Numbered from the stretch's first letter, positions 14,031 through 52,242 are shown. The stretch is 64,000 bases of DNA from Takakia lepidozioides (GCA_030704615.1 CM060733.1:69564001-69628000); one strand, 5' to 3'. Made by a program: numbers and translations. Notes: generated by a model not told the origin, from the letters alone.

Positions 14031-14032
14031 GG

Positions 14033-16559: not shown

Positions 16560-19500
16560 GTTCTCCCGTGTTTCCCTCGTTACCCTCTTTTGACTCACAG
16601 ATGTAAGTACTCCCTTCCTTAGCTGGCTGGCCCTCCAGCCAACGCTTCACTCAAATATGCAGGTGCTTCACGTCTCGCCTCACTCTGTTCCATCGCTTTC
16701 TTGCTGCGTCTTCCAGAATGCATACTCGTTCGCCTTCCTTCTTGGTACGGTCAATGTGCTTGTCTACATAGCCTTGAAAGGAGTATGGATTTCCTGGCTG
16801 CATAAGCTCTCTGCTGTGCCCTTTGTGCTACATCAACATTCTCTCTCAATGTGCCCTCCAGCTCCTGTATGAATGCCATCTTCTCCTCAATCATCTTGTG
16901 CATTGCTTCCTGATCGTCAGTGAGCTCCACTAGTTCGGAAATTTGCCGATATTTGTTGTCTGCTCCCAACCTCATCACCCGTCTTGTCATCACCATGTAT
17001 GGTGAAAAATTACACATGGAAACAAAGAGTGGGACAGAGCCCTTTACAAGACGGCGTTTGGGTACAAAGTGGGCATACAGGCCTCTCAGTGTGATCATGC
17101 TTTCCTTGAGTGATCGAATTAACCTCTCTACCATCCTGTTGCACTGAGGTCAATAAGGGGCTGATCTCTCATGCTTGACCCCAAATTTCTTGCAGGTGAC
17201 TTCGAAATCTTTTGTCCACTCCGACCCGTGGTCTGTGAGCACTGAATTTGGTACCCCGTAGCGGTACATGACCTGTTCTTCAAAGAAGCGAGCTGCCAAT
17301 TTTGAGGTATGATCTGCTACTGCACTTACCTCTATCCACTTTGAAAAATGATCCACTGCGATTAACGCGTATTTGTTGCCTTCACTCGAAACTGGCAGTG
17401 GCCCTGCTGTGTCCAACGCGAATCTATAGAATATATCCTTGATCGGTATGCTTTGTAGTTCTTTTGTCCCTGATTGTAATGGTGTGGCGTTCTTCGCGAT
17501 TTGGCACTTGATGCATGTGCGTAGCACTTGTCTGATGGTGTGGGTGCGGTTATGCCAAAAGAAACATTTGCAGACCTCCATCTGCACCCTCCTGACCCCA
17601 TAGTGTCCAATTTCTTCATGTATCCCTCGAATTATATCCTCTCTAACATTCTTGTCAGGTACCCACTTGTCGTTGAACATGAGCTTCCCTGCCACCAACT
17701 GATATCTTGTTGTTCTTTTCCTGATTTGCTTGATCTCACCATCATCTAGATAATCGTTTGGCTGTCCAAATGTGATCAAGTGCATTGCTTGTATGTCATC
17801 CAATATGTCCGCACTTCTTTCTTCTTTCCGCTCTCCAATGTCATCACACTCCCACTGTTCTTGTTCTGTGTCTACTGCTTGTAATAAACTTACTTGCATC
17901 TCTCTTATAATAATGCCCCTCCTTTTGCTCACCGCAATGGCCAGCAACTCGTCTTCTTCCTGTGACTGTATCTGATTTGTTCCTGCTCCTGCCTGTAATT
18001 CTCTCAGTCCTTTTCCTGCCCATGTTCACTTTCTTCCTTGTTTTGTTCTCCATCTTGGTCTTGTGCTTCCATCCCCTGACTCCTTATTATTACCATGTTT
18101 ATTCTAGGTGTATCATCCCCCATCCTGATGTCAAGAAACCTCTGCAACACTTGGTTTTCGTCCATTCGGGTCTGGCATTGTACCCCTTGGTGTTTTGGTC
18201 TATAATACCAGCAGGCCCTTCGCTGATCTGGCTTCTTTGGTCTGACAGGGTTTGTCTCTTCTTTTGGAGCTTCATTACTGCTGCATATCCCTTGTTGTGG
18301 CTTCCTCCACACGCCATTTACCTTGGTAAGTTTCCACCCATCCGATTGTCCATCACCTTCTTCTCCTTCCATTTGAACTACCCACTTCAGCCCTGCTCTT
18401 GATGGATCGTGTCTCTCCTCATCAGCCCATTCCCAACATTGTGGTTTCACTGTTTCCCTTCGCATTTGTTGCTCTTGGTGCTTGTTGTCTGATCGAGGCA
18501 ACTCTCCCTTTTGCAGTTCAAGTTTCTCTTCCATCTCCCCACTCTGTTTACAATTCCAGTTCTCCGTTGATACCTTGCTGGTTGTATGTTCACATGGGTT
18601 CTCCCCTGTCTTCTTGTCATCATGACTGTCTGTCCAGGCTTTGTCTGTAACCTCACTTTGCTGCATATCTACTGTGTGTAGATTCAATCCTTTCTCACTG
18701 TCCTTACTGAGCCTGAAAAAAACTGGGCACTCTGACTTTCTTCCTTCAATTCTCTCACCCTCAGTCCCTCTAATTGCTGCCATCCTTTCTCTCTCTTGAT
18801 TTCTCTCCCTTGCTGTCACTCTTGTCAGTTTTGACCCTTCTTAGTTCCTTTTGCAGGCGCCATCTGTTGTCCACTCCTTTCAATGCATAGGCTGAACATC
18901 TCTCTTGGCTTCATGGTGATCACATCAGCTAAGTCATCCAACTCTACATCTCTCCCTTCATGCCCATGCTGACCTGTTGCATATGCAACCTTACCAGTAC
19001 TAACTGTCTCTCCACTGCTTGTTCCCTCTTCCCACAGTTGCCTTTCAGTGTCTGATTGTTGTCTGCCTTGTTGTACTGCAGGAATCATTTGATGTTGATC
19101 CTTTCCTCCATTTAATCGCGCCCTCAATTTGTTGTTCCTAAATTGTTCTTGTCCATGCACTCTGGCTTGCTCATTTTCACTGCCGCCTTTGACCATCAAC
19201 CGTGGTAGGTCATGCGTCCCCGTTCTGTTGTAATCACCGCTCCTTCCCTTCATTGTGGTTGCACCATCTACCTTCTGTTGGTCTTTGCTTGTTTTTATTC
19301 TTTGTTGACATCCCACATCTCTACTTTCACCACTTTTCTCTCTTGTACCACTCTCTCCCTGGTTTTGGTGATGGTGTCTTTGTTTGTGTGATAACAGGTT
19401 GGTACTCCTCTTCTCCAGCCTTTTCCCATCAACAGCTGCCTTTCCTACTTTCTTCTTCCTGCAGATAAGGTGGGTCTAGCTTCGCTGTCTCATTTCCTTC

Positions 19501-20938
19501 ATTGCCTTTGTTGTTTGGTGTCTCTGCCTCATCATCCCTTGCATTGGCTACTTCCCCATTGTTTGCCCTTTCCCTATACATTTGTTCTCCATTTTCTAAT
19601 TGGTGTGTATTTTCCTTAATTGCAGAGCCTGTTTGCTGCTCAATCTCCTCTGCATTCAATCCTCCCTTTGGATTACTGCTCTTGTACTTCAACTGCCCCA
19701 AGGCTGTGGTGCACAAACTCTTGTTGTTCTCATATAGTCTGAAAAAAGATACGTCTCCCACTTCTGCTTCCTTGATAGTGTTGCTGCTCATCTTCATGTT
19801 GTATGCAAGCTCCAGGCAATGCTGGTCCTGCCTTGATCCCACTTTCTCAACACCCATACCAACTGCACTTCCATGATTCACCTCCTTCTCCTTTGATTGT
19901 TCCATGCTTAATGATCGTGTCTGTCTTGTTGCATTTGCAGGGCTGATCTCCTGTTCAGCTCCATTCACTTGCATGTCCTCCTGTCGCAGCCCCTTTTCTT
20001 GCAACCCCAAAAGAGATAAGTCTGTCCTCTCTGTCTTACTCCCTAATTTCCCTTCATCAGTGCCTTCAAGTGTCCTCTTGGAACCTCTCATGCCCTCACT
20101 TTGGATTAGATCTTCTCGCTGTGCTTGGTCTGCACTACTCAGTGGCAGTCTATACTCATAGTTGTATTCACTTTCAGTTGTTTGTCCCACAATGTTTACC
20201 CCAGGTAGTAATTTAAACCTGACCCTCTTCTGCTTTAGTTTCCTTTCAGTTATTTTGCATGCAGTTGGAATGACATCTTCTATTGTTTCCTTGATGACCT
20301 CAAAGTCAAACCCAGTGGTCAAGTCTGTGCCCTTAATATTTCCTAGCTGTCTCCACTCAAGCGGATTTAGACTTGTTCTAACCTTGAAGGCTACCCCAGT
20401 TAGTTCCCCCTTGAACTGCCACAGGGCCCAAACAAAGAGATAGTAATGTACCTCACTCATCTTTGATTTATCCTCACTGACTTTCCTCTCATGTACCCCC
20501 ATGACAGTGCTATCAGTCCCTTCAAATTGGATCAGTGTGGCACGAGCAGTTCCTGCACTCAGTGTGTGATCTCCAATTCCAGATGAGTGTTATTTCCTAC
20601 CCCTCCCTCTTCAACTCTTTTGCTACAGTCAGTAGTGAAAATTTCAGGGTCACTCTTGTCATCTTTGCTGTCTACTGGAAACCTGCTCAGTGCATCTACA
20701 TTACCATGTTTCATACCTGGCCTATGCTGGATTTTGAAGTCAAAATCCTGCAGCATCATGATCCACCTTCCACGTCTTCCATAGGCATCACTGATAGTAG
20801 CCAGCCATTCTAATGGCTTGTGGTCCGTGCGCACAACGAATGATGTACCATACAAATACTGACGGAAGTGAATGATGCCCCAAACCAGGGCATAGCATTC
20901 ACCCTTTATGGGATGATAGTTCTTTTGGACTTCTGACA
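16560..20938 (-). mobile_element. Ty3/Gypsy pol 3' half (RNase H - long spacer - integrase), degenerate
   Basis: RNase H (LSEVQKNYHP..ECYALVWGIIHFRQYLYG, VRTDHKPLEWL, HGNVDALSR) at ~20640-20938; integrase HHCC (HEEIGH...CIKCQ) and core (FALDTAGPLP, VDHFSKW, LTDHGSEW, VERLIRSLK) at ~16950-17650. The RT is absent (cut at the MULE junction). Confidence 0.9.
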
Positions 20939-21651
20939 GGAGAGCAGTTGCGGCGTGAGCGCGCTCACGCTTAGCGCACTAAGTGTGAGCAGATTCCCTT
21001 AAGTGTGAGCAGAAGTTAAGCGTGAGCAGAAAGTGGAAGTGGATCATATAACCGTGGAAGAAGCAGGGCCTATTGTCGTTGACGCAAACTTATGCCTATT
21101 AGAGGTTTACATGCCATGATGGGACCGAAGGCGCCGACCTCCATGCCAGAAAATGTGGGATGAATGTGTACGAGAACTTCTCGATGAAGTAAGCAAGTAT
21201 GAATGGGTTCAGGGAAATGGATGAATTAAGGATGGATGTTGGATGATAAAGGGTGGATGAATGTAGCACAAATGAGTTTAATATAATAGCTTGTAAGAAA
21301 ACATTCATGACATTCATCATTTTCATAACAGTCATGGAGTATCATCTCATTCATTCATCTCATAGAAAGTGAATACATAAGGCAATTCTGCAAACAATCA
21401 TTGATCTCATTCAAGAAAGTGTTCTCATTATCCAGCACTAAGCCAGATACAAGTCGACCTGGTTGGAACACAAATATGCATTGAAAAACAACATTGAGAA
21501 GAAATCCTCATTGCAAAACAACATTGATCTCATTCAAAAATGCATCCTTGAAGCAAACGTACCCATCTCCAAAGTCCGATACACCCAGATTTGAGTAACA
21601 ATGACAAGGAGGGCAAACGGGTAGAGTTGTAATGCAAATCCAGACTACATC

Positions 21652-24600
21652 TCAATTTGTACCTGAAGTATCTCGTTGTAGCAGTGTGTGAACATCGCTG
21701 GGTCCAATCGTACATTGGTGAATGTACGTATCTCGTTTTGGATCGCAAAACATTCTCCGAATATAGATGTAGTACAAATGCTTGCACGGGACAAATTTTA
21801 CTCTCTTGCCAAGAGAACTTGAGAGCGTGTTCTGAAAGTCCGGACAAGTGCAATTAGGGAAATCGCCAAAAGTAATCTCATAGGTCCGGTCATGAACAAC
21901 TGATCCAGAGGTCGCCATGGTGTACACCCGCCCATACCCTGGCAAGGGAACATTCACAATTTGGGTGACGCAACACTGCAGGGTTCTAGCAGACTCCATC
22001 TTGCACTCATTGTCTGCACCAGCCTCAACCAAACGTACCGCTTTTCCATCCCTTTTTGTGGGCCTATCATTGCCATGTCGAGGACGTGCTGTAAAGTTGG
22101 AAGGGAAAGCCATTGGGTCAACTGGTGTTACGACAGGAGGGGCTCTCGGAAGGCGAAACCCGGCCTCCTCCAGCATGTCAATCTCTAGTTTGGAGAGTGC
22201 GGTTCCAAACTTCACTGGCCACACGGCTGGAATTTGAGGCTTCATTATCACAGATTCCCAAACAGTCCTCATGACACGGCGCACAATGTCATCCGGGCAA
22301 AACCAAAACTTGTGAGGCCTAGACTCCCGCGACTGGTAATGCTTGAACAACCCGGTGAACGTCGGGGCAGGAGTTCCGCAAGTCACTTTGGAAATTTGGG
22401 ACTTGCACTTCTGGAAGGAGGGGGCCCTAATAGCGGCACATTTGACTTTTGATCCATGGGGAGTCCGTTCGATATGCCACATTGCGTCTGTACAGTCTGA
22501 CTCATCTACCGGCAGAGTGTTCTCCCCTTCACCGGGGACTGTGGTGGTTGGAGACTCCTGAGGGAACGAAGGCAAAGAAGACTCCCCCACAAAGGGGGTG
22601 GCACCCACGAAAGTGGGGGGCACAGGCACACGTGGTACTGAAAAGTTCTCCCGATCGTGGCGGTGTGAATCTGCATCCGAGCCTGGTGGGGTGTCAAGTT
22701 TTCTTTTGCATGAACCAAACCTCTCCTCTCCTTCCAGATGTGCAAGCCGTGACTGCAATGGTGTTCCCATTGTGCACTCGTTCACAGCCCGTGCCATCTT
22801 AGTAGGGTCTTTCAATCTGTTTGCAGCCCTGAGTAGCAACTCTGCCTTGTCTGGCCCCTTGCCTGTACCCCGTCCCCGAAGGAAATCCCGGTACCGTGTT
22901 TGTTGCGAGAGCACGCGGATCATGTCATCAGCTGTGGCAACGTACAGATCCCGCCCGTTCTTCCCGGATTGCTTCATCCAAACACTGTGCACTTACTCCG
23001 AAAGATTGCAGGAGGGCCAAGCGTCATATCCTGTCAGCCATCAGATTATGCAATGAGTTCTCATGTTTTGAGTGCCGTTTTACTGGACAAGAGCAGGCAT
23101 CAAAGTGAAGAAACAAAACCCTCTAACTCCTGGAACTTACTGTTGTCATGAAACCCCCCCACTGTCTGTATCGGAAATGCCAAAACCCAAACCAGTCGTC
23201 CAGCTCTTTGAGGCCTTCCCGGCTTGATGCATCCGAGGAGTACCACCATGCTCAGATAGTTTGATACAGGGAGTTTGCCTCATGGTCCGTCCTTGTATCT
23301 TTGTACAAGCGGCATAGTCTCATGTGCTCGTCCTGCAATTCCACTTTTATGCAACTCTTTGTATGCCTTCGAAGGGACTGCGTCCAATGAAAGAGGCAAG
23401 TGCGCTCCCTACCTTCCATAGGTGTTTTGGGGTCTCCAGATCCAAACATACTGCATTCCAGTTTGCCTGGGCACTATTAGCCATGAATCCATTGAAGTTT
23501 GGATCAGGCACACCATTCAAATTCATGACGTTCACAAGAGACCTCCACATCAGAATTTGAGATTGTGTGTCCTCGGATTGCATGTCGCAAACGGCTATAG
23601 TCATTACTCTCTGGTAAGTGGGATCATACACATGACGAGCCATGGTTGTCCACTCTTTAACACGTTTGACATGGTCGAACATGAGTCATGATTTCTGCAG
23701 ATCGCCTCCAGGTTGCATTCTTCGGACCAGACTAACTCCACTACCCTCCCCCACCATGGACATTTTGAATAAGTACACTTTCAAGGATCCCTGGCCTGGA
23801 AAGACACTATCTTGAATAAAGTCATATTTGCTTCTACGCTTCAAGTCCAGAATGCTATCAAGATGACCTCTGTTCCTTGGGCCTATTCGCAGTGCGTTGA
23901 TGTGATTCCCGACATTGGGCGAGCTTAAAGTGGAAAAATGGTCTATAACAACATCTAGCTTTGAGGAGTCCAGCTTGGCTAAGATATCGTCTGGTTCTCC
24001 AAGAATATATTTTTGCAAGAACGTCTTGCTTGTCGCAAGTGCAATGGCTGATGGTGTAGCATTCGGAGCGTTGAGAACTTCTTGCTGCAGGAGTCCCAGT
24101 GCCGTATGTATACTTTCCCTGCAATCTCCTTTGCACACGGGATGATCATGATTTCCGAGATGTATACAAGCCCAAGTAAGGGTCTGGCAACGATGAAGAA
24201 CGTAGTACATGCGAGCCTTGCAGGTGGCAATGCATGTGGGGACGAATTTGCAAAACCTGCAGATGAACGTACTGTTACTTGGAGTGGCACAACCCACTGC
24301 AAATGGATTGTCCGCACAGCCCTCCCACCTAGTTTCGTTTGTGGAACCAGTCAGCCCTAGGCCACTGCAATTTGCATTTGTACATCGCAGGTGCCCAACG
24401 CAAACTGATCTCCGAAACTTCAACCCATGAGGATTGTGTATGTTGGAAGTTTTTGTCCGGCACCAAGGGTGTCCATCATGTTTCTTGTCCATACCCTACA
24501 TCAAACCAGCCAAACCTCCACATGAGGTTGGAGGCGGCAACTCGAAGAGGACATCACCATGAAATTCAGCAGGCAGACATCGAGCTCTTTCAATTCGAAT

Positions 24601-25153
24601 TGTCCCCCATGCAATCCCACGCACATCACTCCTGCAATTAGGCAAACCTTTCAGAGACTGCAGCTTGGGAATGACACTTGAAATCTCCAGAACATCTGCG
24701 TCAACATAAGCACTCGTGTTTGGCGGTGCAGGGATCTCCAAAATGTCCTCATCCGAGCTTTCGGAGAGCTCCATGAATGTAGTGGAAATGCTGGTCTCTT
24801 CCTTTTTTATGGGAGCAGGTGTGAAGGCTAGAGCCACCAAAGCAGCTGTTCCAGGCGTCAAGATGGAACTTGCAAACAGACGTCTTTGATCCTCGTGAAC
24901 ACGGTAGTTGCCCGCCGGAACTCTCCATTCTCTATGACTCCCAACCATATCTGGCTCCAGTATTAACATGCTGTCAACCCTACCGGAATCATCGTACACT
25001 TCTTTCTCAACATGGACAGTTCCAACTTCAAGTTCCAAGCTTCTATAGAGCACGTCCTCCTTCACAACAACGACACCATCTCCACCCGCGACCTTGCAAA
25101 TGGGCCTTGAATGGGACGCACAGTAGAACTTTGCTATGTTCGCTGTGGGATCC
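21652..25153 (-). pseudogene. MULE transposase pseudogene with GCM-like N-terminal Zn DNA-binding domain, DDE core and SWIM finger
   Basis: N-terminal GHPW.RT..SN.HN...FRRSVCVGHLRC..C...CRFC...C...IHLGNHDHP; core MFD (D1), FMANS (D2 changed to N), CLFHW (CxxH), PSCNLSE (E, ~23000); SWIM CTCPDF...CKHLYY. Several stops and frameshifts. Confidence 0.85.
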
Positions 25154-26229
25154 ATTGCACAGGTGGGTGTAGGTAAAGTGCAGTGCACAGGACGGAGTAC
25201 CTACACCGAAGAACTTAGGAGTACAAAAGCACCTAGTACAAATCCTCTAAGACGTCATATTTGTTGCAATGATGCCATGAATGTACTGCCAAAGGATGAG
25301 GATGTCCGGCACTAACCGACGCTTCATACTATCAAAAGAATGATCATGACCAGCACACGTCAGTGCCTATACAAGCTGCGATTGGCCAAGACCCAAGGGT
25401 AAAATGGACAACATTGATTTTTGCGCGTTCACACCGTTGAGTTTGACCGTTACATTGAGGGCGTATTGGAAAACGTATCCAATGCATGGCATGCGCCAAA
25501 TGCAGCGACAACCAACCTGTCACTGCTGGACACATGTTATGGCATACGCCGACATCCAGGGTGGATGAAGAAGTGCACATAACACATCAGGAAGAAGCCC
25601 TATGTGGACAATGCAACAAAAGTCGCGGACAGGACCTTTTCCATTCATCCCCAAACCCCAATCGTCATTTGAAATACCCCTCTGCAAAGCACCGTCCTTT
25701 CAGAGAGAGTGACCGTGCAGAGTGCCTAGCAAGCTGGAGGGGTTTAGAACAGATAGGAGTGCGTTCAAGCGTCGCAGAAGGAGGCAGTCTTTGTATTTCA
25801 CTACCGAGAGAGAGCGAAGGAAAGCACATGAGAGAATGAAGGGCAAGAGGTTAGGATAAGTGTTTGAAAAGATGGTTGCGGCATCTAGTAGAGAAAAAGG
25901 TCGGGAAGAATGAGAGTTTGTTTTGCTTGCTGCAGATGAGAATGACGAATAGAGCGAAGACAAGGGAACACAGACGGGAGCAGGGCACGATGCCGAGGCT
26001 CAAACCGACGACGAGCACATGGAAGATGCAGGAACGCAATCTATGTTGGGACCGGGCGATCTGAGTTTTTCTCCACTCCATTCCCTGCAAGAGGCCCAAG
26101 AAGAAGCAATACACATCGAAGTGAGAAAACCCTAAACCATTGTCCACTTACTTGTACATTGTGCATTGTATTTTCTTCATGTCTAACTATTCTGCTCGAT
26201 TGCGGCCTCTACAAGAGCAGGTCGCGGCG

Positions 26230-29200
26230 ATGGAGAAGGGGAACAAAAGGGATGGATCGGCACCATCAGGTCAAGGCGAGCACCCGGCAGAGGTAAATAT
26301 TTGCTCCCTGCTTATGTGTGAGAGCACACTGTCCATGGTTGTGTCAACGAAACCCTGAATAGCCTTTCCATCTGAAACACTTCAAGTTTGCATAGTGTAG
26401 TTCAGTAGAGAAGCATGGTACACGGAACAAGCATCAGCGCAGGCTTGCGTTGACGCAAGCCTGATTTGGTAATGCCGAGATCTTAGAGTTTACATCGATT
26501 TGAGTCTCTCAATGTAAACATTGTTTTAGAGACAACGAGGTAAGCAGCACACAGACCAGGCTTGCGTTGACGCAAGCCTGAAGTTTATTCCATACAAACC
26601 TATGTAGGAGCCAGAATTTGTGTCAGTCTATTTGGGAGCCCTGTTGTGTGACTAAGAAAAGGAAAACATCCTTTGTGAGAGAATCATTCCGATGTCCCGT
26701 CCATGCTTGCGTCAACGAAAGGATGTTGATCTCAGCCTGTTTGGGGTTGTCAAACGGTCATTTGAAGACCTCCATGTCATGCTTGCGTTAACGCAAGGCT
26801 GATCTTATGGATCACAAAATCCCACTTTGATCTGATAATGTATTTCTTGTTTCTTCTGATGAGCAGAAGAAGAGGAAAAAGGGCAAAGGCCCTGTTGCAG
26901 TGACAGCAGTCCAAACAGAAGTGTAAGACACAAATATGGATTACAAAGGCATGGCCATCAAGATAAGGTCAGGCTCAAAAGTGAAATCTGGACAGGTAAT
27001 CCGGTCCATGATGGTTATGGAGGCGAACCTCATGTTACCCCTTTGCAGGATGATATCAATGCCTGCTGTTTGTCATGCCCTGACCGGGGATATCAGGAAG
27101 CTTAAAGGAGATTTTGTGCACGGGTATGTTTTTGGAACCCCTGTCTTTTACATTTATGTTGGAGACTCCAATGGGAACGAGAGACTGGTAGACGAGGGCA
27201 TCAAAGGAAAGTGGGATGAGTGCTGGAGGGAAGTGAATTTGGAATTCGAGTAGTCTCTGTCCAGGAGTCCGGAGTTGCAGGTGTACAGTAACAAGATGTT
27301 CTTTGTTTGGGACGGGAACCACCGCCTGCTTGCTTGGCTGGAGTACATTGAATCTATGCATCGAGAGGAGAAAGATTGGCATTACTCCGTCGCGGCGTGC
27401 GTTTTGGATCCGAAGGGAAACTACACACATCTACTAACAGCCATGCATGATATAAACAAGTTCTCTTCAACCACCAGATTTTGATGCAACCTCAGATGCT
27501 ATTATTTTCCATTAAATCCTTTTCTCATTATCGGCTTGACGGTGCAGGCAGACAGAGTCTTCCCATGTCACCACAAACCTGGTGCATACATTATTCAGGA
27601 TGCAAAAGTTAGGACGGATGCCATTGTCCAACTTCAAGACTATTCTTTCACCCGAGGCCTTCGAGAAGTGCGAGACCTCCAAAAGGGCAGAGACATGGTA
27701 CACACTCACGAGGGATGCGTTCCTGGAGTACATGTACACGGTAAGTCCTGCAAACTGCCATTTTTTATCATTCATATGTACCCATGTTCAGGCTTTCAAC
27801 GCAAGCCTGAATCATTGTGAAGTTTAGATTCAAATACCTATTGCACATTTTGGAGTCTCACCTTTTCAACGTTGCCTTTGGGTTGGATAGCAAGAAATCG
27901 CTGATGCGGGAGAGAGGGGAAAAGCGGAATATTACGGGAAAACTCCAGAAAGTGAACGCACTGCCTACGGTACTGAGGCGGCAATGACCTTCCACATGAA
28001 CGAATTCCGCGGGAAGGTGGTGAATGCGTTCACCAAGCAACTGCGCATAGCTGATCCCGGTCTTGGCCCTCAGTTTTTGGATGAGGTTCGCATTCATTGG
28101 AGCAAGACAATAAAGCCTGAGATGACACAAGAGAAGCTGCACAGGCTTGCCATGGCAATGGTGGAGCCAGCAGTGAAAATACGGTGGCTTCAAATTTGGA
28201 ACTCTGAGCCTGTTCTACGGCAAGCAAATAGTTTTCCCATGGGCGAGAAGAACGACTCCACTAGAGTCGTCACCCCTTTCAGTGACCAAGTATGGGACAT
28301 CTGGCTTCATATAGCCACATTCTGGGCGCAGGTAAGAATTTTATGACACGGGTCTTCAATGTCTGTTTTGAATGTCTTTGAGTGCATTCGCAAAATCTAA
28401 CCAAGTTACTTGCGTGCCAGTTGGAGGAGAGGGCTGAGGAGGTTATGGAGAAATCTCTAACAGACTTCAAGATAGTCGTTGCTACACCCGATGAGTCATT
28501 CGAGACCTGGATAAGGAGGTGGAAAGGGATCGTTTGGGACCATGCGTTCTTCCGCGAATTTGCTGTCGATGGTGGGATTAACCGTTCGAATTTGTTCGAT
28601 GCGCAGTACAATGGGGAGCAGGCGATGAAGCGAGTCATATACAGGTTTCATTTCATGCTTTTTAATGTTGTGAGCTGTTCTTTAAGATAGAAGCTTTCTC
28701 TATTGAGGCTTGCGTTAACAAAAGCCTGCGGACCCTGCTACTCATGGCTTGCATTATCCCGAGTGTTTTTGGGCTAGGGTCAGGCTTGCATTGACGCAAG
28801 CCTATCTAGTGTATGGAATATATATTGGTGGTTTGAACCAAGTGTTAGGAAGGGGTATGTTGTGAGAATTTGAATTACAGGTATGCATTGTTTCCTTCTA
28901 GCAAAAATTGTGCTAGAGGGTCTGCATGAGGCTTGCGTTGACACAAGCCTGTTTGATGGCAGCCCACAACTTCGGTTATAAAAGGATTTCTTAAGTGTCA
29001 AACTCTTGTTTCAGAACCGGAAAGAGGCTTTCGTTGACGCAAGGATGAGTTTACCCTGCACTTGGATTGTTTTTTGTTAAGTGTTACAACACCAGGATGG
29101 AGCCTGCTATAATGTCTTCCTATGAACTCTCCTGATTTTTGTTGCTTTTGTTTTTGCAGATATATCCACGGGGTGCTTTCTCCAGGTGGTTTTGTAAGCT

Positions 29201-30870
29201 TGTACCCATTCTTCATTGACAGCTGGGCAAAGACAAATCCCGACACAACAATGTACACAGCGGGCATTCTGGAGAACTGGAGCAGGTCTCATTTCAAAGA
29301 TTGTGGGTGGTACCTTGATTGCCCGAGACAATCGACACCCTGGGAGGTGAACGTCCTGCGAAATTTGAATGACAATGCAGAGGCTCTTGCGCCTCTGACA
29401 GATAGGCAGCTTCAGTTGAGAGATCTCCGGCTTCTCAAAGCAAAGGAACCAGTTGTAAAACAGAGCCCGAAAAAGAAGGGTGGAAAGAAGAAGGACAAAA
29501 AGAAAGAGGGCAAACAAGGTCAGGCAGCGGCTGCTGTGGCAGGAGGGGCACAGAGGGGTTCACAACTAGATCTGTCGGACAAACCATACGAGGCCCTACC
29601 TATCCCTGGCAGAGGTGTTGCCACGGGCTACCAACACAAGACAGTCAACAAAAGCTTCTTGGACATGATGGAATCAAGGAGGAAAGGCGGCACAGTCAAA
29701 GAGAAGTCCCCAACTTGGGAGACATTGTCTTCATTCCTCACTCTGGTAAATTCCTTATCCACTCCCCTCCTTGTCACTTGGTTCTTGCAGTGTGGTCAAA
29801 TGTCCTTTGAATTGAATTGCTTTGGGGGGTGAAGGCTGAGAAAGGTCCATCGTAACGGAGAGAAAAAACCGTTTGCCTGCGAGCTCGTTGTTGTGGACAT
29901 TCCAGACGGTCTTCCAGTCCCAGATCTTCCACCGAAAGGTGTCACTCCAGCCTAGAATGAATGGGACGAGCGCTACTGGCCCTGGGTCTTCAAGTTCTGT
30001 GGGAACTTCTTGGCTGACAATGGGTGTTTGCTCATCCTACAAGCTGCCAATGCAAAGTGCCGACGACTACTGTCCAGTTTCCTGAAGTCTAGTGGGATGA
30101 AGGTGATTAAAAGCTGGAATGGAGTTAACAGTCTCCCACTTACAAAGGGGGACTTCCCAGGCCAGAAGGTATGTCGTATCCTCCATTTCATTAAATCTTG
30201 TAGAAATGTTCCCCGTGTTTGTATAGCTTTATTTTCCTTCTGCGCTGTCAATCTTCTCTTGCATCCTTGCGTTGACGAAATCGTAGTGCAAGGTTGTCAT
30301 TTGCTACCTACCTTGATGTTGCCTTGGCGCTCACCTGACTGAGTCCGGTGTTTTTATTTCATAGACACGAGCTTTCGATGCACACTGTCTCGTAAGAGAA
30401 CGCCACCCATCCACACCGTCATCCGTTAAGGAGTTCCAGGTCTTGAAAGGGGGAGCGCATGTTGACTCGTCCTGCGATCCCGTGGATGATGATTTTATCT
30501 GCAACTACGTGGACGCCTCACTTACTGTGCTGCGGAATTTCCGGAGAGCCATGGAGAGGTGCACGGGAAAAGAGTCCTGCATTCATGCAAATAGTCATCG
30601 AGTCTTGCAGTGTTGAAGGGTCCCGTGTTGTTGACCTCACTCTCGGAACAGGTTCAGGCCTTCACACTCTAGCAATAATCTGCCTTCATTGTTGTAGTTC
30701 GAAAGTGCAGGTTCGTGCAAATATCTTGGCTCATTTGGTTTATTCGTCTGGCAAGGGCATCGTTCCATGCCTACAAGGCTGCTGGAAGGCATCTGTTCGC
30801 CTTTGAGGGGGATGGAGAGCTGTACAAAGAGGTAATTGCCATTAGAAAAAAAATGAGGCCAAAGAAAGGC
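26230..30870 (+). pseudogene. multi-exon gene: ParB/Srx-like domain fused to a beta-class N4C/N6A DNA methyltransferase-like domain
   Basis: GT-AG exon reconstruction. ParB-like: LKGDFVHG...PVFYIYV and FFVWDGNHRLLAW (27311-27325). MTase-like: ELVVVDIPD (motif IV position, 29896-29907), WDERYWPWVFKFCGNFLADNGCLLI, EKSPAFMQIVIESCSVEGSRVVDLTLGTG/ASFHAYKAAGRHLFAFEGD (motifs X-I-II). At least 4 in-frame stops and 1 frameshift. Confidence 0.75.
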
Positions 30871-31169: not shown

Positions 31170-31800
31170 AAAGCTCCCCTTTTCCAAGCTTGCACCATGG
31201 ACCATAGGTAATCTGGAGCTTGAAATCCGACCCTCTTGGATGAATCTAGACCCACACTGTATCCTTGCTTCTTCAGCTATCACTGTCTCTGCACAAATCA
31301 TGCATACATCCTTGCCTTGCTGCCAATGCGATCATCGCACTCCACGACACCACATCTCGTTGAGCCACATTGTCGAACACTACCTTTGCATCTTCAATGC
31401 TCCTGCATTTGGTGTACATGTCCCCCAGAGCGGTGTTCAGAATGACATCTGGTACAATTCTAGCGAACACGATGTCACCATAGACCTCTTGGCCGCCAGG
31501 CTTGCACATGCGTTAACGCAAACAAACGTGATGTGGTTGGGCTTTTCACCCCTTCCCGCATCATTTGCTCCTAGGTCTCGAAAGCCTCCATCCCACGCCC
31601 CTGTTGTGCATCTTGTGATCATTGCCTTCCATGACCCCACATCTTGTTCAGCCATATGGTCAAATAATCCCTTTGCATCCTTGATGTTCCCACATTTGAC
31701 ATATATGTTCAACTATACTAGTGCTTAGAGCAACATCTGGTACAATTCCAGCTTTGGTCTTCATCTTTCCCGCATCACTTGCTCACATCTCTCCAAAGCC
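31170..31800 (-). pseudogene. PPR gene fragment
   Basis: NIYVKCGNIKDAKGLFDHMAEQDV and ALGDMYTKCRSIEDAKVVFDNVAQRDVVSWSAMI, frameshifted; ~31200-31420 is near-identical to ~14490-14710. Confidence 0.85.
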
Positions 31801-32944: not shown

Positions 32945-33075
32945 GCGACCGCCAAGGTGATGGTCGCTCCATTTAAAAAAAACAAAATTAAAGCGACCGC
33001 CAATAATGGCGGTCACTGCATTTACAAAAAATTAAAAATTAAAGCGACCGCCAGCAATGGCGGTCGCTCCATTAA

Positions 33076-33127
<52 letters not shown>

Positions 33128-33410
33128 GACCGCCGGTCACTGCATTTACAAAAATAAAAATAAAAATAAAAATAAAAAGTGACCGCCAGTAATGGCGGTC
33201 GCTCCATTTTACCAAATAAAATAAAATAAAACTGACCACCAATAATGGCGGTCGCTCCAATTCCAAGGAAAAAAAAAAAAAAAAAAAAAACGACCGCTAG
33301 TAATGGCGGTGGCGGTCGCTGCATTTACCAAAAAAAAAATTAAAGCGACCGCCAGTAATGGCGGTTGCTCCATTTTGGATTTTTAAAAATAAAAATAAAA
33401 ACGACCGCCA
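32945..33410. repeat. array of ~9 GCGACCGCCA-N4-TGGCGGTCGC hairpin repeats with A-rich spacers and a (TA)n tract (33081-33126)
   Basis: Directly visible repeats; they lie 3' of the hAT fragment and are probably its subterminal repeats. Confidence 0.85.
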
Positions 33411-44730: not shown

Positions 44731-46099
44731 TCATATACAAAATTCTTTTCCAGTACCCTTTAATCAGTCTTGGTATGTCAGTAAGAAAAATTATAGTGGT
44801 CTTTACCCTTTCTCCAAGATTTACCCTATCTTGCCAGAATCCATATTACGACTTAATTTTCCCTTTACTGATTGATCACCAATCTTTCAATGGGCACAAT
44901 AATACCATTTGTCTTTTTCAGTGTATCTGACTTGTAACAAGTCTTTGGGTATCCAGTACTCTACTGCTTCTACGATCATATGACAATATTCATAATTTGA
45001 ACATCTTTCCCTGAAAATATAACTAGTGTAGCAAACTTTTCTGATCGAGATTAGAGTAATCAATAAAGCTAGACGAGACAACCATTCTTCACTTCTGATT
45101 CTAGAGGTTTACTATTTCATGAGCCCATGAGCTCATGAGCCTATGAGCTCATGAGCCCATGAGCGTGCATCCACGAAATTAGAAATAATCTGCCGTTAGT
45201 GACGGTAATAGGGCATATATCCACGGTAATAGGCACTGTTTCTGAACTCCGGGGACGCGGCTAGGCCTATTGCGGCGCCGTTATTCACATTTAGGGTTTG
45301 GAAAAAGAATTAAAAATGGCAGGAGATGGGTTAATCACGGTGCCGTAATACCAGCTTCGTGCTTCTCGAAAAATTTCTTGGTAGTGATGACTTGAGACCG
45401 GCCTATTGCTGCGACGTTTTTTTGTTTGTGGTCACCCAAAATTATAAAGTAAAGTCTGACATTGGCTTATTGCAACACTATTATATCATTTGTAAAGGTC
45501 TTGTTGTTCCCAACACCTTATACTAGCCTATTGTTGTGTCATTTTTCTGTCAAAGATAAGAGGTCCCATCACATAATATAGTTGAATTGGCTTTTTTTAA
45601 GACTAAATAAATCCCACACTGACTGAAGAGAGGTTAGGAAATTGCCATTCACTCTCCACCTAAGCTTGCAAAGTGTCCTCCTCATCGCCGCCACTTTCAG
45701 ACGTGGACATAGCGATAAACTTGAGTACTTTGGCCTTGACAATTCTTGTATTGGGCCTCCCTCAATTGTATTCTCTCATTTCTTGCAGCCAGTAATTGCT
45801 CTACCCAATTAGGCCTCTCCGCCCTCTTAATGGATCTCTAGCAGCCGTGTTTGCATACAATGGGAGAAGAAATAAGAAGGGGAGGAGGAGACCGAAGTTG
45901 AGGAGGCTCAAGTACGGGAGAAGCCGCTTCCCCCAATGCATGTATTTGAGTGAGTTGCACCATTGTAAGTGTGTTGGGTTCAATTATAGCGACATCCATG
46001 TTTGACCATTATAAACCCTAAACGTTTGTTGACATATGGCAATATTTACATACTGCCATGTTACAGCCTTGCAGACTCGTCCAATGAGGAGATGGTTGA

Positions 46100-47140
46100 T
46101 GAAACAAAGACTAAAATACAAATGCCATTCTTTGCCAGAAGGTCCTTTCTTGCAGTCCTCATCGTCCTCATGCTCCTCCTCTGCTGGCAACTGCTGCAGG
46201 CCCGCTACATGGGAGTCGTAGAAGGTTGTTTTTCCTTCAAATGCGAAGACATGCCGACTAGACTCGCGCCCGGCCCAGTACATTGAAGCACCTATCCATG
46301 AGTCTAGTGATCAAGAACAAATATGTCAATAGCAATCGTGAGTAGCCATAGTAAATCCATGAATATCTATAGAGGACAATGGACTCTAATAACGACACCG
46401 CAACTACAAGAATCTCCTACTTGTGTTGGCTGCAATGTCCAACACCCTGCCTTCTATGCTTGAACATGTTTCCATCAGCATTTGAATGAAAGTGGGACTT
46501 CTTGTCCTCCCATGCCTCCAAGCCCTCCCCCTCATGTCCCATGGAATATTGCGTGGTGAGACATGGTTGAAGAGAATGTCATACTCTATAGGGTCCACTA
46601 TGGAGTCAACCATACAACCGTCTCCCCATAATTCAAAATTGAATTCTTCTTGGTGACTGTGTCAAATAGAAGAGGCTGCACAAAAACAAGGTCGTTATTT
46701 TGACATAAGATTCCCCACAATTAGAATAAGGGCGCCGCAATTTACACTAGACAACTCTAGAGCTTACCTTCTGGCCATCGCAGGTTAGATGGTCCATGCT
46801 GTTGATGCAAGTCATCTCTTCTTCAAGGTGGGTGCAACACTTTTTTCCGTCCACACTTTCAAGGCTTCCGCACTCATCTTGTAACATATGTTAGAGAGCA
46901 ATTTTGATTGGTGACAGAGGATTTTAAAGAGACAGTAAAATAGTAGCAGACATTTGCATACCTTCTCGGCCGGGTCCACACAGGCGGTGGTGATATGATG
47001 TAGTTTTTCCACATCTCTGGTTTGATGGTTTTTGAGTAGTGCTTTGCTATCTCTGACAATATTGTCTCTTAAAGGCTTGGGTCAGGGATCGCTATAGACC
47101 TGACAACTTTGGATCTGTACTTGGTCCGCGACCGTTGCCT
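46100..47140 (-). pseudogene. diverged remnant of the MULE methyltransferase-like cargo gene
   Basis: KYRSKVV..IPDPSL..ILSEIAKHYSKTIKPEM.EKLHHITTACVDPAEK, VDSIVDPIEYD...AWRHGRTRSPTFIQMLMETCSSIEGRVLDIAANT and GASMYWAGRESSRHVFAFEG all align by eye with the 26230-30870 gene; introns fall at the same positions (after GQK and within motif I). Confidence 0.8.
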
Positions 47141-48446
47141 GCAAGGACGATGACATCCCGGACGAGGGCCTGGGTCTTATTGGGGATCTCACATCCAACA
47201 GTGGAACTCATCCAGGCCAGGAATGCTTTCCGTTCCTCGGGATGGGCCCGTTATCCCTATTACAGCGCCGCAACTCATCAGTGTCGGGTTATCCCGCTAT
47301 GGGGATTGGCATGTTCATCCATAATATGGCGTATTAATTCATCTGTGCCGGGCTATTCCGTTCTACAGATGGGCCCATTCAACTATATTACAACGTCGTA
47401 TTTCAACAGTGTCGGGTTACCACGTTCTGCGGATGGGCCGACTCATTTTTATTACGGGTATATTTATCCTAATTTAGATGAACGAGTCTATCTTGAAGAC
47501 GATAAAGAGCGCTTTGGATGATATGCGGTGTCTTTTTGGATGAATTGCGGTGCCGCAATAGGAATAAACGGTCCTAGCCTGACACCGGTCGGCCCCTCCA
47601 CTGATGAATTACGACACTGCAATATGAATGAACTGACCCAGATGATGGATGAACAATGACACTGTTATAGGGATGATAAGTGACATTGCTATTTGATGAC
47701 AAGTTTTATACATGGAAATGACGTTTTTTCTACGAATTTGCATTTTTGTAAAATGCATACTTGGTTGTAAAGACATGAAGTACTCATTTATGTGCTGCTG
47801 CAGTCGCTATTGCGGCGCCGAAATTGCGTACGGCAGTCAGTGAATATTGACCGTTGGGTTTCACGTCGAGGTGTTCGTGCCTTTGTACTTGCAGATTTAG
47901 GCTAAGAAATCTAAGTTCGGTAGCATATAATGGCGCCGTAATTGTAATATATCCTGGTTTCATTTGGAATTGGATGACTTATAGACCTGGCCCAGAGTCC
48001 TCGAAGGTCCTCATAATGAAATATAGGTACGAGAATTGGCCGATGAGATTGTCATCCGAAAATTTTCCAACGAATCCTCAGATGGAGGATTAACGTCGCC
48101 CTTACTATGACTTGTTCATGATAGACCTTCTGTCTGCGTAGCAGCCACTATATCAGACCCATCCAATTGGATTCAATGTCATCATTTCTTCTGCATACGG
48201 GCCGATTGCGTTGTCAGGAATGTGTGTGTTCTGTGACAGGGTGACAGAGAAGCGTAAAAACGCACATGACACATATGTTGTGCTGTATAGAGTGCAAGAA
48301 GTGGGACTTGCACCTCTGAAGGACTTTAAAACAGCCATCAATCTGGAGTTGTTAAGGAAGTCAGAGGTGAAAGCAGGCCGCACCTAGTCCGCCGGCTTAT
48401 CTTGGACACCATGGTCGAATACATCTATTTGGTGAGATTCAGCCCT

Positions 48447-48822
48447 AACTTTTGCTCACGGGTATGTTCATCCGAATTTCGGCGTTGAAAATTATCCGTG
48501 GGTCAAAATATCTTTCTACTCACGGGTATGTTCATCCCTATTTCGGCGCCAAAATTCGTCCATGGGTTTAAATTCATTTTGATTACGGGTACGTTCATCC
48601 CTATTATGGCGCCGAAATTCATCCGTAGGTCGAAATAACTTTTTGCTCACGGGTACGTTCTTCCCTATTTCGGCGCCAAAATTCATCCGTGGGTCGAAAT
48701 AACTTTTTGCTCCCAGGTACGTTCATCCCTATTTCGGCGCCGAAATTCATTCGTGGTCCGAAATAATTTTTTGCTCACGGGTATGTTCATCACTATTTCG
48801 GCGCTGAAATTCATCCATGACC

Positions 48823-48862
<40 letters not shown>

Positions 48863-49560
48863 CCTCCCGGCGGCGGTTCCTCAGGATTGGCCTATTTCGG
48901 CGCCGAAATTCATCCATGAAGGAGGTTGTGTGTGTGTGTATGGGTTTTTTTTCGACGTAATGGGCCCGATCGTCCCTATTACGGCGCCACAATCCAATGG
49001 TTCTGTCCCCTTGTCGTCCGCATTCTTGTCTGTTCAACCCTTTTGCGACATCGTGATTCATCCATCTGCTCACGGGTACGTTCATCCCTATTTCGGCGCC
49101 GTAATTCATCCGTGGGTTTAAATTTTTTCTTGATATAGGGTATGTTCATCCCTATTTCGGCGCCGAAATTCATCCTTAGGTCCAAAATAACTTTTTGCTC
49201 ACAGTTATGTTCATCCATATTTCGGCGCCGAAAATCATCCGTGGGTCGAAATAACCTTTTACTCATGCGTATCTTCATCCCTATTTCGACGTCGAAATTC
49301 ATCCATGGGTTTAAATTCATTTTTGTTCATGGGTTCGTTCATCCCTATTTCGGCGCCGAAATTCATTTATGGGTGGAAATTCTTTTTTGCTCACGGGTAA
49401 GTTCATTCCTATTTCGGCGCCAAAATTCATCCGTGGGCTGAAATTCTTTTTTGCTCACGCGTATGTTCATCCTTATTTCGGCGCCGAAATTTATTCGTGG
49501 GCTGAAATTTCTTTTTGCTCACGGGTATGTTCATCCCTATTTCGGCGTCATAGCGGTGTG
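48447..49560. repeat. ~64-bp tandem repeat (~16 units) with a 16-bp palindromic core ATTTCGGCGCCGAAAT
   Basis: GGCGCC-type cores at 48545, 48608, 48672, 48736, 48800 and onward (period 63-64); interrupted by a T40 run; degenerate copies extend to ~49870. Confidence 0.92.
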
Positions 49561-49869
49561 ATATCCCTTTCTCGTCCGATTTCGTGCATGTTCATCCCTA
49601 TTGCTGCGTCGTAATTCATCCATCTCGAGGGTTTCGAACTGTCATATTAGGACTGTTCATCCCTATTACGACGCCTTAAATTCCTCCAGATCATGCCATT
49701 CTCATTTGATTGCCATCCCGTTCATCCCTATTACGGCGCCGTAATAGGGGTGTGACATCATTTTCTTGTCCGCTTTTGTGCCCGTTCATCCCTTTTGCGA
49801 CGTCGTAATTCATCCATTCCGAGGGTTTCAAACTGTCATGTCGGGACTGTTCATCTCTATTACGGCACA

Positions 49870-50270
49870 ATGAAGAAGCTGGGCGAGGGGGATATGAAGG
49901 AACTTCTAGAAGCTGGGAAATGGACTCCAGTATTGCGAGAAGCTATAAGATCGACACCCTTACACCATCGGGGGGACTGTCTCGAGGGTGATGTCCACAA
50001 TCGGCCGGTGAAGAGAATAATTGACAACCTCCCAGGAGGCGACGGGGATTCATGGAGATCAGATATGGACATCCACACTCAACCTCGGGGCCCAACGATG
50101 TTGCTTAGGACGCCAGGTCCAAGCAGGACTCCCACTCCCCTGAAAACACTTGTACTACAAATATCTGAAGCGCGTGAAGTGCATTCTTATAGTGGACGAC
50201 TTCATCCATGCTCCAACACTGAGCTTCAACGAGCTCCACAAGGTCCTCAGGCAGAATATAGGGAGAAGGT
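49870..50270 (+). pseudogene. C-terminal remnant of MULE transposase (SWIM region)
   Basis: KLGEGDMKELLEAG, HNRPVKR and P*KHLYYKYLKRVKC...DDFIHAPTLSFNELHKVLRQ parallel LSKLEIDMLEEAG, NDRPTKR and PCKHLYYIYIRRMFC...DTYIHQCTIGPSDVHTLLQR of MULE-1. Confidence 0.75.
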
Positions 50271-52242
50271 TCACATTGGACGATCGTAATTCAGAAATTG
50301 CAAAGTGTGTTACATCACATATACCCTTTCAATGTTGTTATTGGGGCGCTTTTATCCCTTCGAAACTTATGGACCTCATATTGTGACCTAATTTTGTGAC
50401 CTTCATCCCACTACATGCAAGTCTTTTGGCAAGAACTATATACATTTTGATGTCGTCGTGTTTCCATGGACTGCCCTATTACGGTGCCGTAATAGGATAA
50501 GTGTCCCCTTCCAGCCTGTATCTTTGAATTATGTTTTTGTCTGCTAATGGATCAGTGTAAAACATTCATTTTTTGGAGATGTAGGGGCCAATTTTGGTGC
50601 CTTTATTCCTCTGAAACTTCTGCACTTCATATTGTGATCTTCATCCCATAGCATGCATGTCTATTAGCAACAACTATAGATTTGGTCCCGTTGTGTTTCC
50701 ATCGCCTACCCTCTTATGGTGTCGTAATATGGGAAGTGTCTCCTTTAGCCCTGTTTCCAATAAGCATGCCTCTAATTCTACATTTGCTTGTTAAAGGATC
50801 AGTGCAAAGCATACATTTTTTGGAGATGCATGGGCCCATTGTGGCCTATTTATCCCTGAACTCACTCTTGCTTCCAATGATATGGCTATGTTTGCCACGT
50901 GCAGTGCCTTTAATGGATTACAGGTGTCTTGTTCCAATGTCCATGGCGCCTAGTATTAATGATTATTGCATTCACATACTGCACCTTGTCCACAAAGACC
51001 ATTCCCATACACAGACCACACGTCCCAAAAATTGTTATGCTCAATTGCAAATTCCGTAGAGAGGAGAGATGAGATGTGCAATGGAGCAACGAGCAAATCG
51101 GAATGAGACTGAGGCTGGCGGAATTGGATATCATTGCTCCACCACCAATGTGGTATGGGGAAAAACTCAAAATTTACTCCCACATGTCGGTACATTTATT
51201 GCACACATACACCACAAAATTCAGCATAGTTTGCAATTGCCAGTCTCAGGCTCCATTTTGGGGTCAACCATCCTACATTTTGGCGCCTTTGATGCTTCAC
51301 TGCGGCCAAATCAACCGACACCTTCTGGACATGGGTGCCCAATTTCCGTGCCGTTATCAGGGATCATCACCCATTTCGAAGTCCTGGAGAATCGTGAAAT
51401 CCTAGAAAAGTACTATCCACGATAACAGGTCCACATTGCGCGTCTGGCAGGACCCCGGATCCTCTATTTCGGCGCCGTTATTGCCTTCACTCCGGAGCCT
51501 TCAGCCGCCTATTGGTTTTCCGGTGCCCAATTTCAGCACCATTATCCCCAGCCAGCCTACAGTTCTGGAAAAGTACAATCCACGGTTACAGGCCCACATT
51601 GCGTGTTGGGAGTCTGGAAAACTCGATTGTAATTCCGCGGGCGCCCCTTCCTGTGGGGTAATTGCGGCGCCGTTATTGGCCAGTATGCAGTTTTTCCATG
51701 ATCTGGGCTGGCGGTACATGAGCTTGGGCTCTCGGTCATGAGCGGATACTGTTATTCATGAGCGGAGTGTTTCGAGCATGAGCGTGGAAATCTTTGAAAA
51801 GAAAATTTTGATCTTCACAAAGTATTAAAAAAAATACCACTTTCGATTATTTTATGGTTTTTTTCCTGAAAAAAACTTGCCGTTATTCGGAGTGTGTTAC
51901 TTGGTGGCTCATGGCTCATGCATGCCCGCTCATGAGCTCATGGCTCATGAGCTCATGGCTCATGAGCTCATGGCTCATGAGCTCATGGAATAGCAACCCC
52001 CCTGATTCTACATTCTCAAGGTGCTCGTGTGATACTGATCACTCCTCCCTTTAAGCTCCATTTGTCATCTTCTTTCGCAATTGAAAGAAATATCTTCTAT
52101 TGTATTGCTATTGGTAAGCCATGAATTTTTTTCAGGAATGCTTTCCATTCTTCTGCTTCTGTTGACTCGTTCTTTCGTGATTTCAAGAAATCACTGAGCA
52201 ACCATCATTCCTTGAGTTCACTTGAACTCAACATACCGTTAG

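Follow-up and report, generated by a model that had tools for sequence, protein, structure and literature searches.

The subject of this study is a transposon that lies in a 64,000-nucleotide stretch of DNA from Takakia lepidozioides (GCA_030704615.1 CM060733.1:69564001-69628000), referred to below as the window, in which all positions are counted from the first letter. Copy 1 of this transposon occupies about 20.9-30.9 kb, where a transposase gene on the minus strand and a multi-exon accessory gene on the plus strand are arranged head to head. From N- to C-terminus, the accessory protein consists of a ParB/sulfiredoxin-like domain, a conserved middle region, a Lys-rich tract resembling a nuclear localization signal (NLS), and a beta-class methylase fold. 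The features of copy 1 are as follows.

20941..21030: probable left (transposase-side) terminus, GAGAGC... and then three direct subterminal repeats, AAGYGTGAGCAG, at 20981, 21001 and 21018
21652..25188, minus strand: transposase pseudogene of a Mutator-like element (MULE-like), in which a DDE-type core stands between a Cys/His-rich region at the N-terminus and a SWIM-like finger at the C-terminus
26441..26800: part of the spacer upstream of the accessory gene in which a 22-nt palindrome, AGGCTTGCGTTGACGCAAGCCT, occurs three times
about 26942-30870, plus strand: multi-exon accessory gene
26942..27481, plus strand: ParB/sulfiredoxin-like exon with IPLCRM..., PVFYIYV (27140-27160) and FFVWDGNHRLLAW (27299-27337; GxxRxxA motif), broken by a TAG at 27251-27253
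about 27546-27779, 27891-28330 and 28418-28648, plus strand: three middle exons conserved in all family members, from tblastn to the public loci L001, L004, L006 and L008
28706..29046: four further copies of the 22-nt palindrome, in the intron that follows the middle exons
29137..29755, plus strand: exon with a conserved CWY(L/I)(E/D)C block and the Lys-rich NLS-like tract KQSPKKKGGKKKDKKKEGK (29458-29514)
29839..30240, plus strand: N-terminal half of the methyltransferase-like domain, with the motif IV equivalent VVVDIPDGLPVP (29887-29922) and FLADNGCLLI (30007-30036)
30365..30656, plus strand: variable segment resembling a target-recognition domain, then motifs X and I (PWRGAREKSPAFMQ...VVDLTLGTGS), including the motif GEPWRGAREKSPAFMQIVIESCSVEGSRVVDLTLGTGS (30543-30656)
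30742..30870, plus strand: last recognisable exon, motifs II/III (AAGRHLFAFEGDGELY), including the motif AAGRHLFAFEGDGELYKEV (30778-30834), with no terminus after it

Copy 1 is a dead copy, and both of its genes are pseudogenes with premature stops and frameshifts. The transposase lies in five pieces, since stops interrupt its reading frame at 24496-24498 and 23686-23688 and the frame shifts near 23400-23449; as L001, the closest relative, has these pieces in one continuous frame, the breaks are regarded as lesions and not as introns. In the accessory gene, the TAG at 27251-27253 interrupts an exon that is continuous in L001, L004 and L006, another TAG (29953-29955) stands at a Trp conserved in the family (P-x-W-N), and a +1 frameshift is located near 30537/30538, where contigs of other genomic copies have one base fewer. 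A left terminus near 20941 appears plausible from its architecture, which resembles that of the terminal inverted repeat (TIR) of copy 2 and of a terminus in Ceratodon (both described below) in having a G-rich start followed by short repeats. The subterminal repeats of copy 1 are confined to this left end. A TIR search of the window found no matching inverted repeat to the right of the accessory gene, and copy 1 is therefore truncated or rearranged on the accessory-gene side. The 22-nt palindrome, when up to three mismatches are allowed, gives 13 strand-matches at seven sites, all inside copy 1, against a chance expectation of 0, and these sites could be protein-binding sites or small inserted elements. 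A related palindrome is seemingly also present upstream of the ParB exon in L001 (translated as QPCVNA).

The accessory parts belong to a single gene, because overlapping open reading frames (ORFs) and gene models chain them together. One ORF of L004 spans the ParB part, a retained intron and the first middle exon; in P0076 and other database ORFs, the later middle exons continue into the front half of the methylase-like domain; and two models from Ceratodon (KAG0605740.1 and KAG0624017.1) run from the first middle exon through to the methylase-like C-terminus. Unaltered ORFs or database proteins were used for all folds and searches. A word-based homologue search with a 151-aa middle exon returned no matches. 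Contigs from two runs, only guessed to be RNA, lie on the exon blocks with intron-size skips and have ends or skips at 28646-28648. An intact 596-aa relative carried by L011-L013 was also considered as evidence of expression, but was not counted, since a transcript and intron-poor genomic DNA are indistinguishable in this case.

The window holds a second, diverged and decayed copy of the same family (copy 2) in inverted orientation, with the following features.

45095..52010: copy 2 as a whole
45095-45103 and 52002-52010: perfect 9-bp target-site duplication (TSD), CTGATTCTA, directly outside the TIRs
about 45104-45170 and 51922-52001: TIRs, the left one GAGGTTTACTATTTCATGAGC... and the right one, as reverse complement, GGGGGTTGCTATTCCATGAGC...
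about 46.2-47.2 kb, minus strand: accessory-gene remnants
about 49.9-50.3 kb, plus strand: transposase remnants

Both genes of copy 2 are located between TIRs flanked by the 9-bp TSD, and copies 1 and 2 resemble each other at the protein level only, with no similarity at the DNA level. The family is not limited to the window. The 446-aa last exon of the transposase has 72 homologues in public assemblies (E down to 9e-146), and seven public places of transposase homologues were fetched together with their upstream flank. ParB-like exons were found upstream of the transposase, on the opposite strand, in six of these seven, namely a Logan contig (L001), three loci of a European Nucleotide Archive (ENA) assembly (L004, L005, L006) and loci on two chromosomes of the moss Ceratodon purpureus (L008, L009), a species with copies near CM026436.1:18.14 Mb and CM026442.1:7.41 Mb. 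The sole locus that lacks the accessory gene, L007, is a truncated copy in which the front of the transposase is gone as well. The same gene is thus present in the same orientation and order in seven of the eight loci examined, with 35-60% protein identity to the window copy; in L001 the identity reaches 52-62% in the ParB and middle exons. Further, a single DNA run of the organism from which the window comes contains 635 contigs with at least 80% identity to the stretch, and the family is therefore highly repeated.

The two Ceratodon loci are 99% identical over at least 16 kb and stop sharply at the same point, in GGGAAAAACAC... and then (GAGCGTA)n, at 1.2 kb past the accessory gene. Their flanks differ beyond this point, a pattern characteristic of a recently mobile unit to which the accessory gene belongs. 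The Ceratodon proteins KAG0624017.1 and KAG0605740.1, annotated as hypothetical, cover the rest of the gene and omit the ParB exons; an open ParB-like exon of the same gene family (8697-9188 in both L008 and L009) precedes the start of these models by about 0.8 kb, and the annotation probably misses the N-terminal domain of the accessory protein. The spacer between transposase and accessory gene contains in both loci tandemly repeated units of about 138 bp (L008 6343-7482, L009 7033-7482), the copy number of which differs between them. L006 contains a tail-to-tail pair of the family's transposase genes within 2.5 kb of each other (13788-16934, minus strand, and 7760-11314, plus strand), which suggests insertions that are nested or side by side. 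No inverted repeats and no shared terminus came out of TIR searches in L003/L004 and in the interval between these two elements of L006.

The accessory gene is a dedicated feature of this Mutator-like family and not a chance neighbour, because the divergent linkage is kept in copy 2, bounded by TIRs and TSD, and in six public loci including Ceratodon purpureus. The initial annotation of the window, made from the sequence alone, had proposed exactly such a dedicated gene, and the proposal stands; the check that it suggested for linkage inside TIRs comes out positive for copy 2 with its TIRs and TSD, but not for copy 1, the right end of which is missing. All the peptide motifs that it quoted were found on the plus strand at their places, whereas the gene spacing of about 1.1 kb that it gave has to be corrected, the two start regions of copy 1 being separated by a spacer of about 1.75 kb.

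The N-terminal exon displays conserved blocks across the family (IPLCRM.., ..VFYV.. and FFVWDGNHRLLAW), and the D/E-G-N-H-R/K-x-x-A-W sequence (the GxxRxxA motif, as in DGNHRLLAW) is kept in the window, L001, L004, L005, L006 and Ceratodon. A GxxRxxA motif of the DGxHR type, placed after the central strand, is the nucleotide-binding signature of the ParB/sulfiredoxin superfamily. Profile searches gave little beyond this motif: no ParB family of Pfam was matched by any exon, the only hit being a weak one to DUF1015 (E 0.086), which we take to be a ParB-like family; a profile of the ParB exon searched against PDB sequences found no ParB; and tblastn of this exon against phages yielded no meaningful matches. 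Structural comparison is more consistent. An exhaustive aligner other than Foldseek placed 14 of 48,161 chains at Z of at least 2, each match being individually non-significant, and eight of these 14 have the ParB/sulfiredoxin fold, comprising KorB (the best, Z 3.9), PadC, SspE, Arabidopsis and human sulfiredoxin, pNOB8 ParB-N, the serine kinase SerK and Atu1540. By language model, the exon has DUF3723, ParB_N, DUF6551 and DndB as its neighbours. Taken together, it is likely that the N-terminal domain is ParB/sulfiredoxin-like.

The C-terminal domain escapes direct Pfam annotation, as 17 ORFs of the window and 10 ORFs of related loci gave only weak matches to SWIM, PPR and RT_RNaseH. Likewise, phmmer of the methylase exon against PDB returned nothing meaningful, and a language-model search with the 107-aa exon of the window gave only weak "methyltransferase fragment" leads (0.85-0.86). 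However, a profile of the front half of the domain (A1) found 189 relatives among 1.84 billion representatives, and two long ones carry, downstream of the part matched by A1, a sub-threshold match to N6_N4_Mtase (PF01555), with 20.8 bits and E 4e-4 for P0154 and 15.7 bits and E 0.015 for a Ceratodon protein. The gathering threshold of 26.7 bits is not reached, and the pieces of the window and L006 have no N6_N4_Mtase match at all. A profile built from a 46-sequence family alignment (A3) matched, among PDB sequences, only beta-class DNA amino-methyltransferases (M1.HpyAVI/DpnA E 9e-6, CcrM 0.02, rotifer N4CMT and M.RsrI). These matches share a single register between motif IV and motif I, in which VDLviaDipegL falls on VDLIFADPPYNL of CcrM and ...EKd..f...Li....gdiVlD...tG falls on ...QKP..L...I....GD.VLDPF.G.G. 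An AlphaFold (AF2) model of P0154:296-596 had a mean predicted local distance difference test score (pLDDT) of 78.8 and a predicted template modelling score (pTM) of 0.76, and Foldseek ranks 1-32 of this model were all beta-class N6/N4 DNA methyltransferases, including CcrM (the best, E 1.6e-11), M1.HpyAVI, M.BceJIV, MboIIA, RsrI, TTHA0409, N4CMT and PvuII. In addition, hhalign against a stand-alone Gordonia phage methyltransferase gave E 4e-4, and the weak tblastn matches in phages fell in 85 of 85 cases on annotated DNA methylases. Because the PDB profile, AlphaFold/Foldseek and hhalign agree, the beta-class N6/N4 amino-methyltransferase fold of the domain, with its permuted motif order (IV-VIII, variable region, X, I-III), can be regarded as established, and a prokaryotic origin of the domain is plausible from the fold.

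What has changed in this fold is the catalytic loop. At about 80 non-redundant family sites, the catalytic tetrapeptide reads D/E - V/I/L/M/Y - P - E/D/K, most commonly DVPE, DIPE or DIPD (the last in the window copy), followed by G/N-L-P-V-P, and none of these sites carries the canonical motif IV, (D/N/S)PP(Y/F/W). In amino-methyltransferases the aromatic residue of motif IV stacks on the flipped base, and its loss therefore predicts the loss of canonical base-amino methylation, so that a canonical writer of N6-methyladenine (6mA) or N4-methylcytosine (4mC) appears doubtful. On the other hand, the strong conservation of the replacement loop shows that it still has some use. In motif I (V-V-D-L-x-A-x-T-G), the Asp and the second Gly are kept across subfamilies, the position of the first Gly being occupied by S, N, A or G, and the Glu of G-R-x-x-x-A-L-E in motif II is kept. 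Since both its Pfam scores and its motif IV fall short of the family, the domain is best filed as a derived relative of N6_N4_Mtase and not as a member.

On the protein itself, the initial annotation had read the two domains largely correctly: the beta-class N6/N4 fold and its motif order have been recovered by the PDB profile and by Foldseek, and the ParB/sulfiredoxin-like assignment is likely, given the retained GxxRxxA and weak structural matches that agree. The profile check that it suggested against PF01555 and ParB came out mixed, with sub-threshold N6_N4_Mtase matches on two relatives and a PDB profile match on one side and no ParB profile match on the other. Its phrase "4mC/6mA writer or derived DNA-binding protein" has to be divided, the writer being disfavoured by a motif IV that is never canonical at about 80 sites and the DNA-binding half being the more likely.

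We consider it probable that copy 1 is a dead, right-end-truncated copy of a bryophyte-type MULE-like family with a divergent, intron-containing accessory gene, the ParB/sulfiredoxin-like and methylase-fold product of which serves as an element-specific helper, most likely without canonical methylation. We infer for this protein a role analogous to the one that MURB or VANC plays in other MULEs. Once inside the nucleus, it would target the DNA of its own element, with the subterminal repeats or the palindromes as possible sites, by means of a nucleotide-dependent DNA-binding module of the ParB type and a DNA- or S-adenosylmethionine (SAM)-binding module derived from a methylase, most likely without canonical adenine-N6 or cytosine-N4 methylation. 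It is speculation that the subterminal repeats and the 22-nt palindrome are the candidate cis sites. As to the protein's mode of action, a non-catalytic role in binding DNA, and perhaps SAM, is a serious possibility that we would put at a little short of even, the remainder being divided between a true methyltransferase, considered below, and other roles.

Several observations weigh against this explanation. The right inverted repeat of copy 1 is missing, and no Pfam MULE or Transposase_mut match was obtained for any transposase piece or homologue searched. No piece of the window copy, L001, L004, L005 or L006 reached a Pfam threshold. The model of the ParB domain was built from seven sequences only and is of low confidence (pLDDT 60), and its top Foldseek matches, sulfiredoxin and Noc, are individually non-significant (E 0.4-1.5). 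The kept Asp of motif I and Glu of motif II could equally indicate a working enzyme. Finally, the contigs that suggest expression of paralogous accessory-gene copies come from runs that were only guessed to be RNA.

The alternative that survives best sees in the accessory protein an active DNA methyltransferase whose catalytic loop is non-canonical; such an enzyme would place 6mA or 4mC on the element or on the host genome, for example as an anti-silencing device. The fold itself is well supported as that of a beta-class N6/N4 DNA methyltransferase, the subfamilies retain the Asp of motif I that contacts SAM, together with the loop's second Gly and the Glu of motif II, and the D-x-P-[E/D]-G-L-P-V-P block is so strongly conserved that it must be under selection; moreover, 4mC writers of bacterial type exist in Marchantia (MpDN4MT1; bioRxiv 10.1101/2021.02.12.428880) and in a rotifer (N4CMT; PMC8885841). 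However, the Pro-Pro-aromatic of motif IV occurs at 0 of about 80 family sites, with an acidic residue at position 4, the first Gly of the G-loop is variable, and Marchantia DN4MT1 itself has TSPPY. The methylase-like domains of METTL14 (EPPL) and DIRS1, which are without the stacking aromatic, are regarded as inactive (PMC4738411). We therefore judge an active enzyme unlikely, while giving it real weight. A specific version of it, in which a ParB-type clamp would load on the repeats or palindromes of the element and deliver a D-V/I-P-E/D methyltransferase that writes 6mA, 4mC or another mark as a self-mark against silencing, is less likely again.

A second question concerns the superfamily of the transposon. 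The missing Pfam match of the transposase pieces and homologues would be expected if the element belonged to another DDE superfamily, such as a SWIM-bearing Zisupton/KDZ-like lineage, some members of which come with DNA-modification genes; in this connection, Iyer et al. are said to have described in 2014 that fungal KDZ transposons travel with TET/JBP genes. The C-terminal end of the transposase is a CxC...CxH SWIM-like finger, although Pfam SWIM is matched only at E 0.068. Against another superfamily stand the 9-bp TSD, a length within the 8-11 bp of Mutator elements, and the G-rich TIR starts, both typical of MULEs, and the succession of zinc-chelating N-terminal region, core and SWIM finger, which is the architecture of the MULE/FAR1 type; furthermore, the core has MULE/ZSWIM1-3 RNaseH-like clusters as each of its ten best named language-model neighbours, the highest score being 0.95. 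A Zisupton/KDZ-like or similar affiliation is accordingly very improbable, and the assignment as a divergent Mutator-type (MULE-like) DNA transposon is supported by the TSD, the inverted repeats, the SWIM finger and the language-model neighbours.

Least credible is that the gene pair represents chance neighbours or a one-off, Pack-MULE-style capture of a host-gene fragment, for although copy 1 has no right TIR and thus cannot by itself place the gene inside the element, seven of the eight loci, some of them from another species, repeat the gene with its orientation and order, their proteins having diverged to 35-60% identity, copy 2 holds both genes between TIRs with a 9-bp TSD, and the gene-less L007 is truncated with the front of its transposase gone too. 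The Pack-MULE reading was rejected also for its cargo, a complete gene of several domains that has been conserved along with the transposase in different subfamilies (35-60% identity) and species.

The surroundings of the two copies contain other sequences. An RT_RNaseH fragment (E 1.8e-6; 20559-20855, minus strand) lies directly left of the probable terminus of copy 1, and further reverse-transcriptase ORFs at 42.8-43.6 kb and 52.7-53.5 kb flank copy 2. Fragments of PLS-type pentatricopeptide-repeat (PPR) genes, which point to a land plant, are located at 31202-31756, 9698-10579, 14492-14734 and 34907-35443; the one near 31202 adjoins the truncated right side of copy 1, and its part 31202-31447 is 91% identical to 14492-14734. 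At 32985-33410, a cluster of short palindromic repeats (AGCGACCGCCA..TAATGGCGGTCGCT) surrounds an (AT)n tract and is possibly similar to a miniature inverted-repeat transposable element.

Autonomous Mutator-type elements that carry an element-specific accessory gene next to the transposase between their TIRs are represented by MuDR (mudrA/mudrB) and VANDAL21 (VANA/VANC), which also share with the present family the divergent or convergent arrangement of the genes and the 9-bp TSD. Their accessory proteins are known to help integration in the case of MURB and to counter silencing in the case of VANC (PMC12973397). The accessory protein described here is unrelated to either of them, combining a ParB/sulfiredoxin-like domain with a beta-class amino-methyltransferase fold, and whereas MuDR and VANDAL21 belong to flowering plants, the present family is seen in Ceratodon and in plant or metagenome assemblies, not in angiosperms.

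The combination of the two folds, in the same N-to-C order and likewise on mobile DNA, is found in the fusions of ParB-like domains with N6_N4 methyltransferases in phages, plasmids and integrative and conjugative elements, and in the methylases of ParB-terminase loci. The beta-class motif order is another likeness, as are the matches to CcrM, M1.HpyAVI, M.BceJIV, MboIIA and RsrI. In contrast to these fusions, the present family has D[V/I]P[E/D] in place of DPPY, a conserved middle region of about 400 residues inserted together with the NLS-like tract, and spliceosomal introns; tblastn against phages gave no significant pairwise match of its ParB-like exon to any phage ParB. We infer descent of the accessory gene from a fusion of this kind.

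Within eukaryotes, a parallel is provided by DIRS1 and METTL14, in which an amino-methyltransferase fold with a degenerate motif IV is kept under selection, that of DIRS1 being moreover borne by a transposable element. The methyltransferase-like domain of DIRS1 is thought to bind rather than to methylate (PMC4738411). These domains belong to the Group 2/PCIF1-like and MT-A70 clades, in contrast to the beta-class N6_N4 domain described here, and that of DIRS1 is a polyprotein domain of a retrotransposon, whereas the present one is encoded by a separate gene of a DNA transposon. On the other hand, Marchantia MpDN4MT1a/b and rotifer N4CMT are beta-class N6_N4-type folds in eukaryotes, N4CMT being among the structural matches of the present domain, but these enzymes are encoded by host genes, have retained motifs of the (T)SPPY/SPPY type, are of shown activity and have no ParB fusion (PMC8885841). 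A broad survey of eukaryotic adenine methylases found few such enzymes in land plants and does not contain the present family.

A further lead, given by a language-model score, is DUF3723, the nearest neighbour of the ParB-like exon of L001 (2948-3409) at 0.94. DUF3723 is a conserved accessory gene of the fungal Starship giant transposons, described as related to bacterial chromosome-segregation proteins (bioRxiv 10.1101/2021.12.13.472469). The likeness to the present family is that both genes are conserved accessories of eukaryotic DNA transposons; Starships differ in being fungal and in their tyrosine recombinase, and DUF3723 has, as far as seen, no methyltransferase domain. ParB-like accessory proteins may thus recur in unrelated eukaryotic DNA transposons.

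Two-gene MULEs as such are known, and it is their second genes, such as MURB and VANC, that decide on the integration of the element or its escape from silencing. A second gene assembled from two folds that are typical of DNA handling in bacteria and phages, however, is unreported for plant transposons in the literature searched, as the initial annotation had supposed. Surveys of transposon accessory genes that are based on Pfam miss the present family entirely, and the annotated Ceratodon models omit its ParB exons. An active accessory protein would mean that land plants have a source of DNA methylation other than 5-methylcytosine that is encoded by a transposon, and the long-debated existence and purpose of plant 6mA/4mC would become testable in the tractable moss Ceratodon. 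With an inactive protein, a methylase fold would have been recycled as a DNA-binding factor of transposition or anti-silencing, in parallel to DIRS1 and METTL14.

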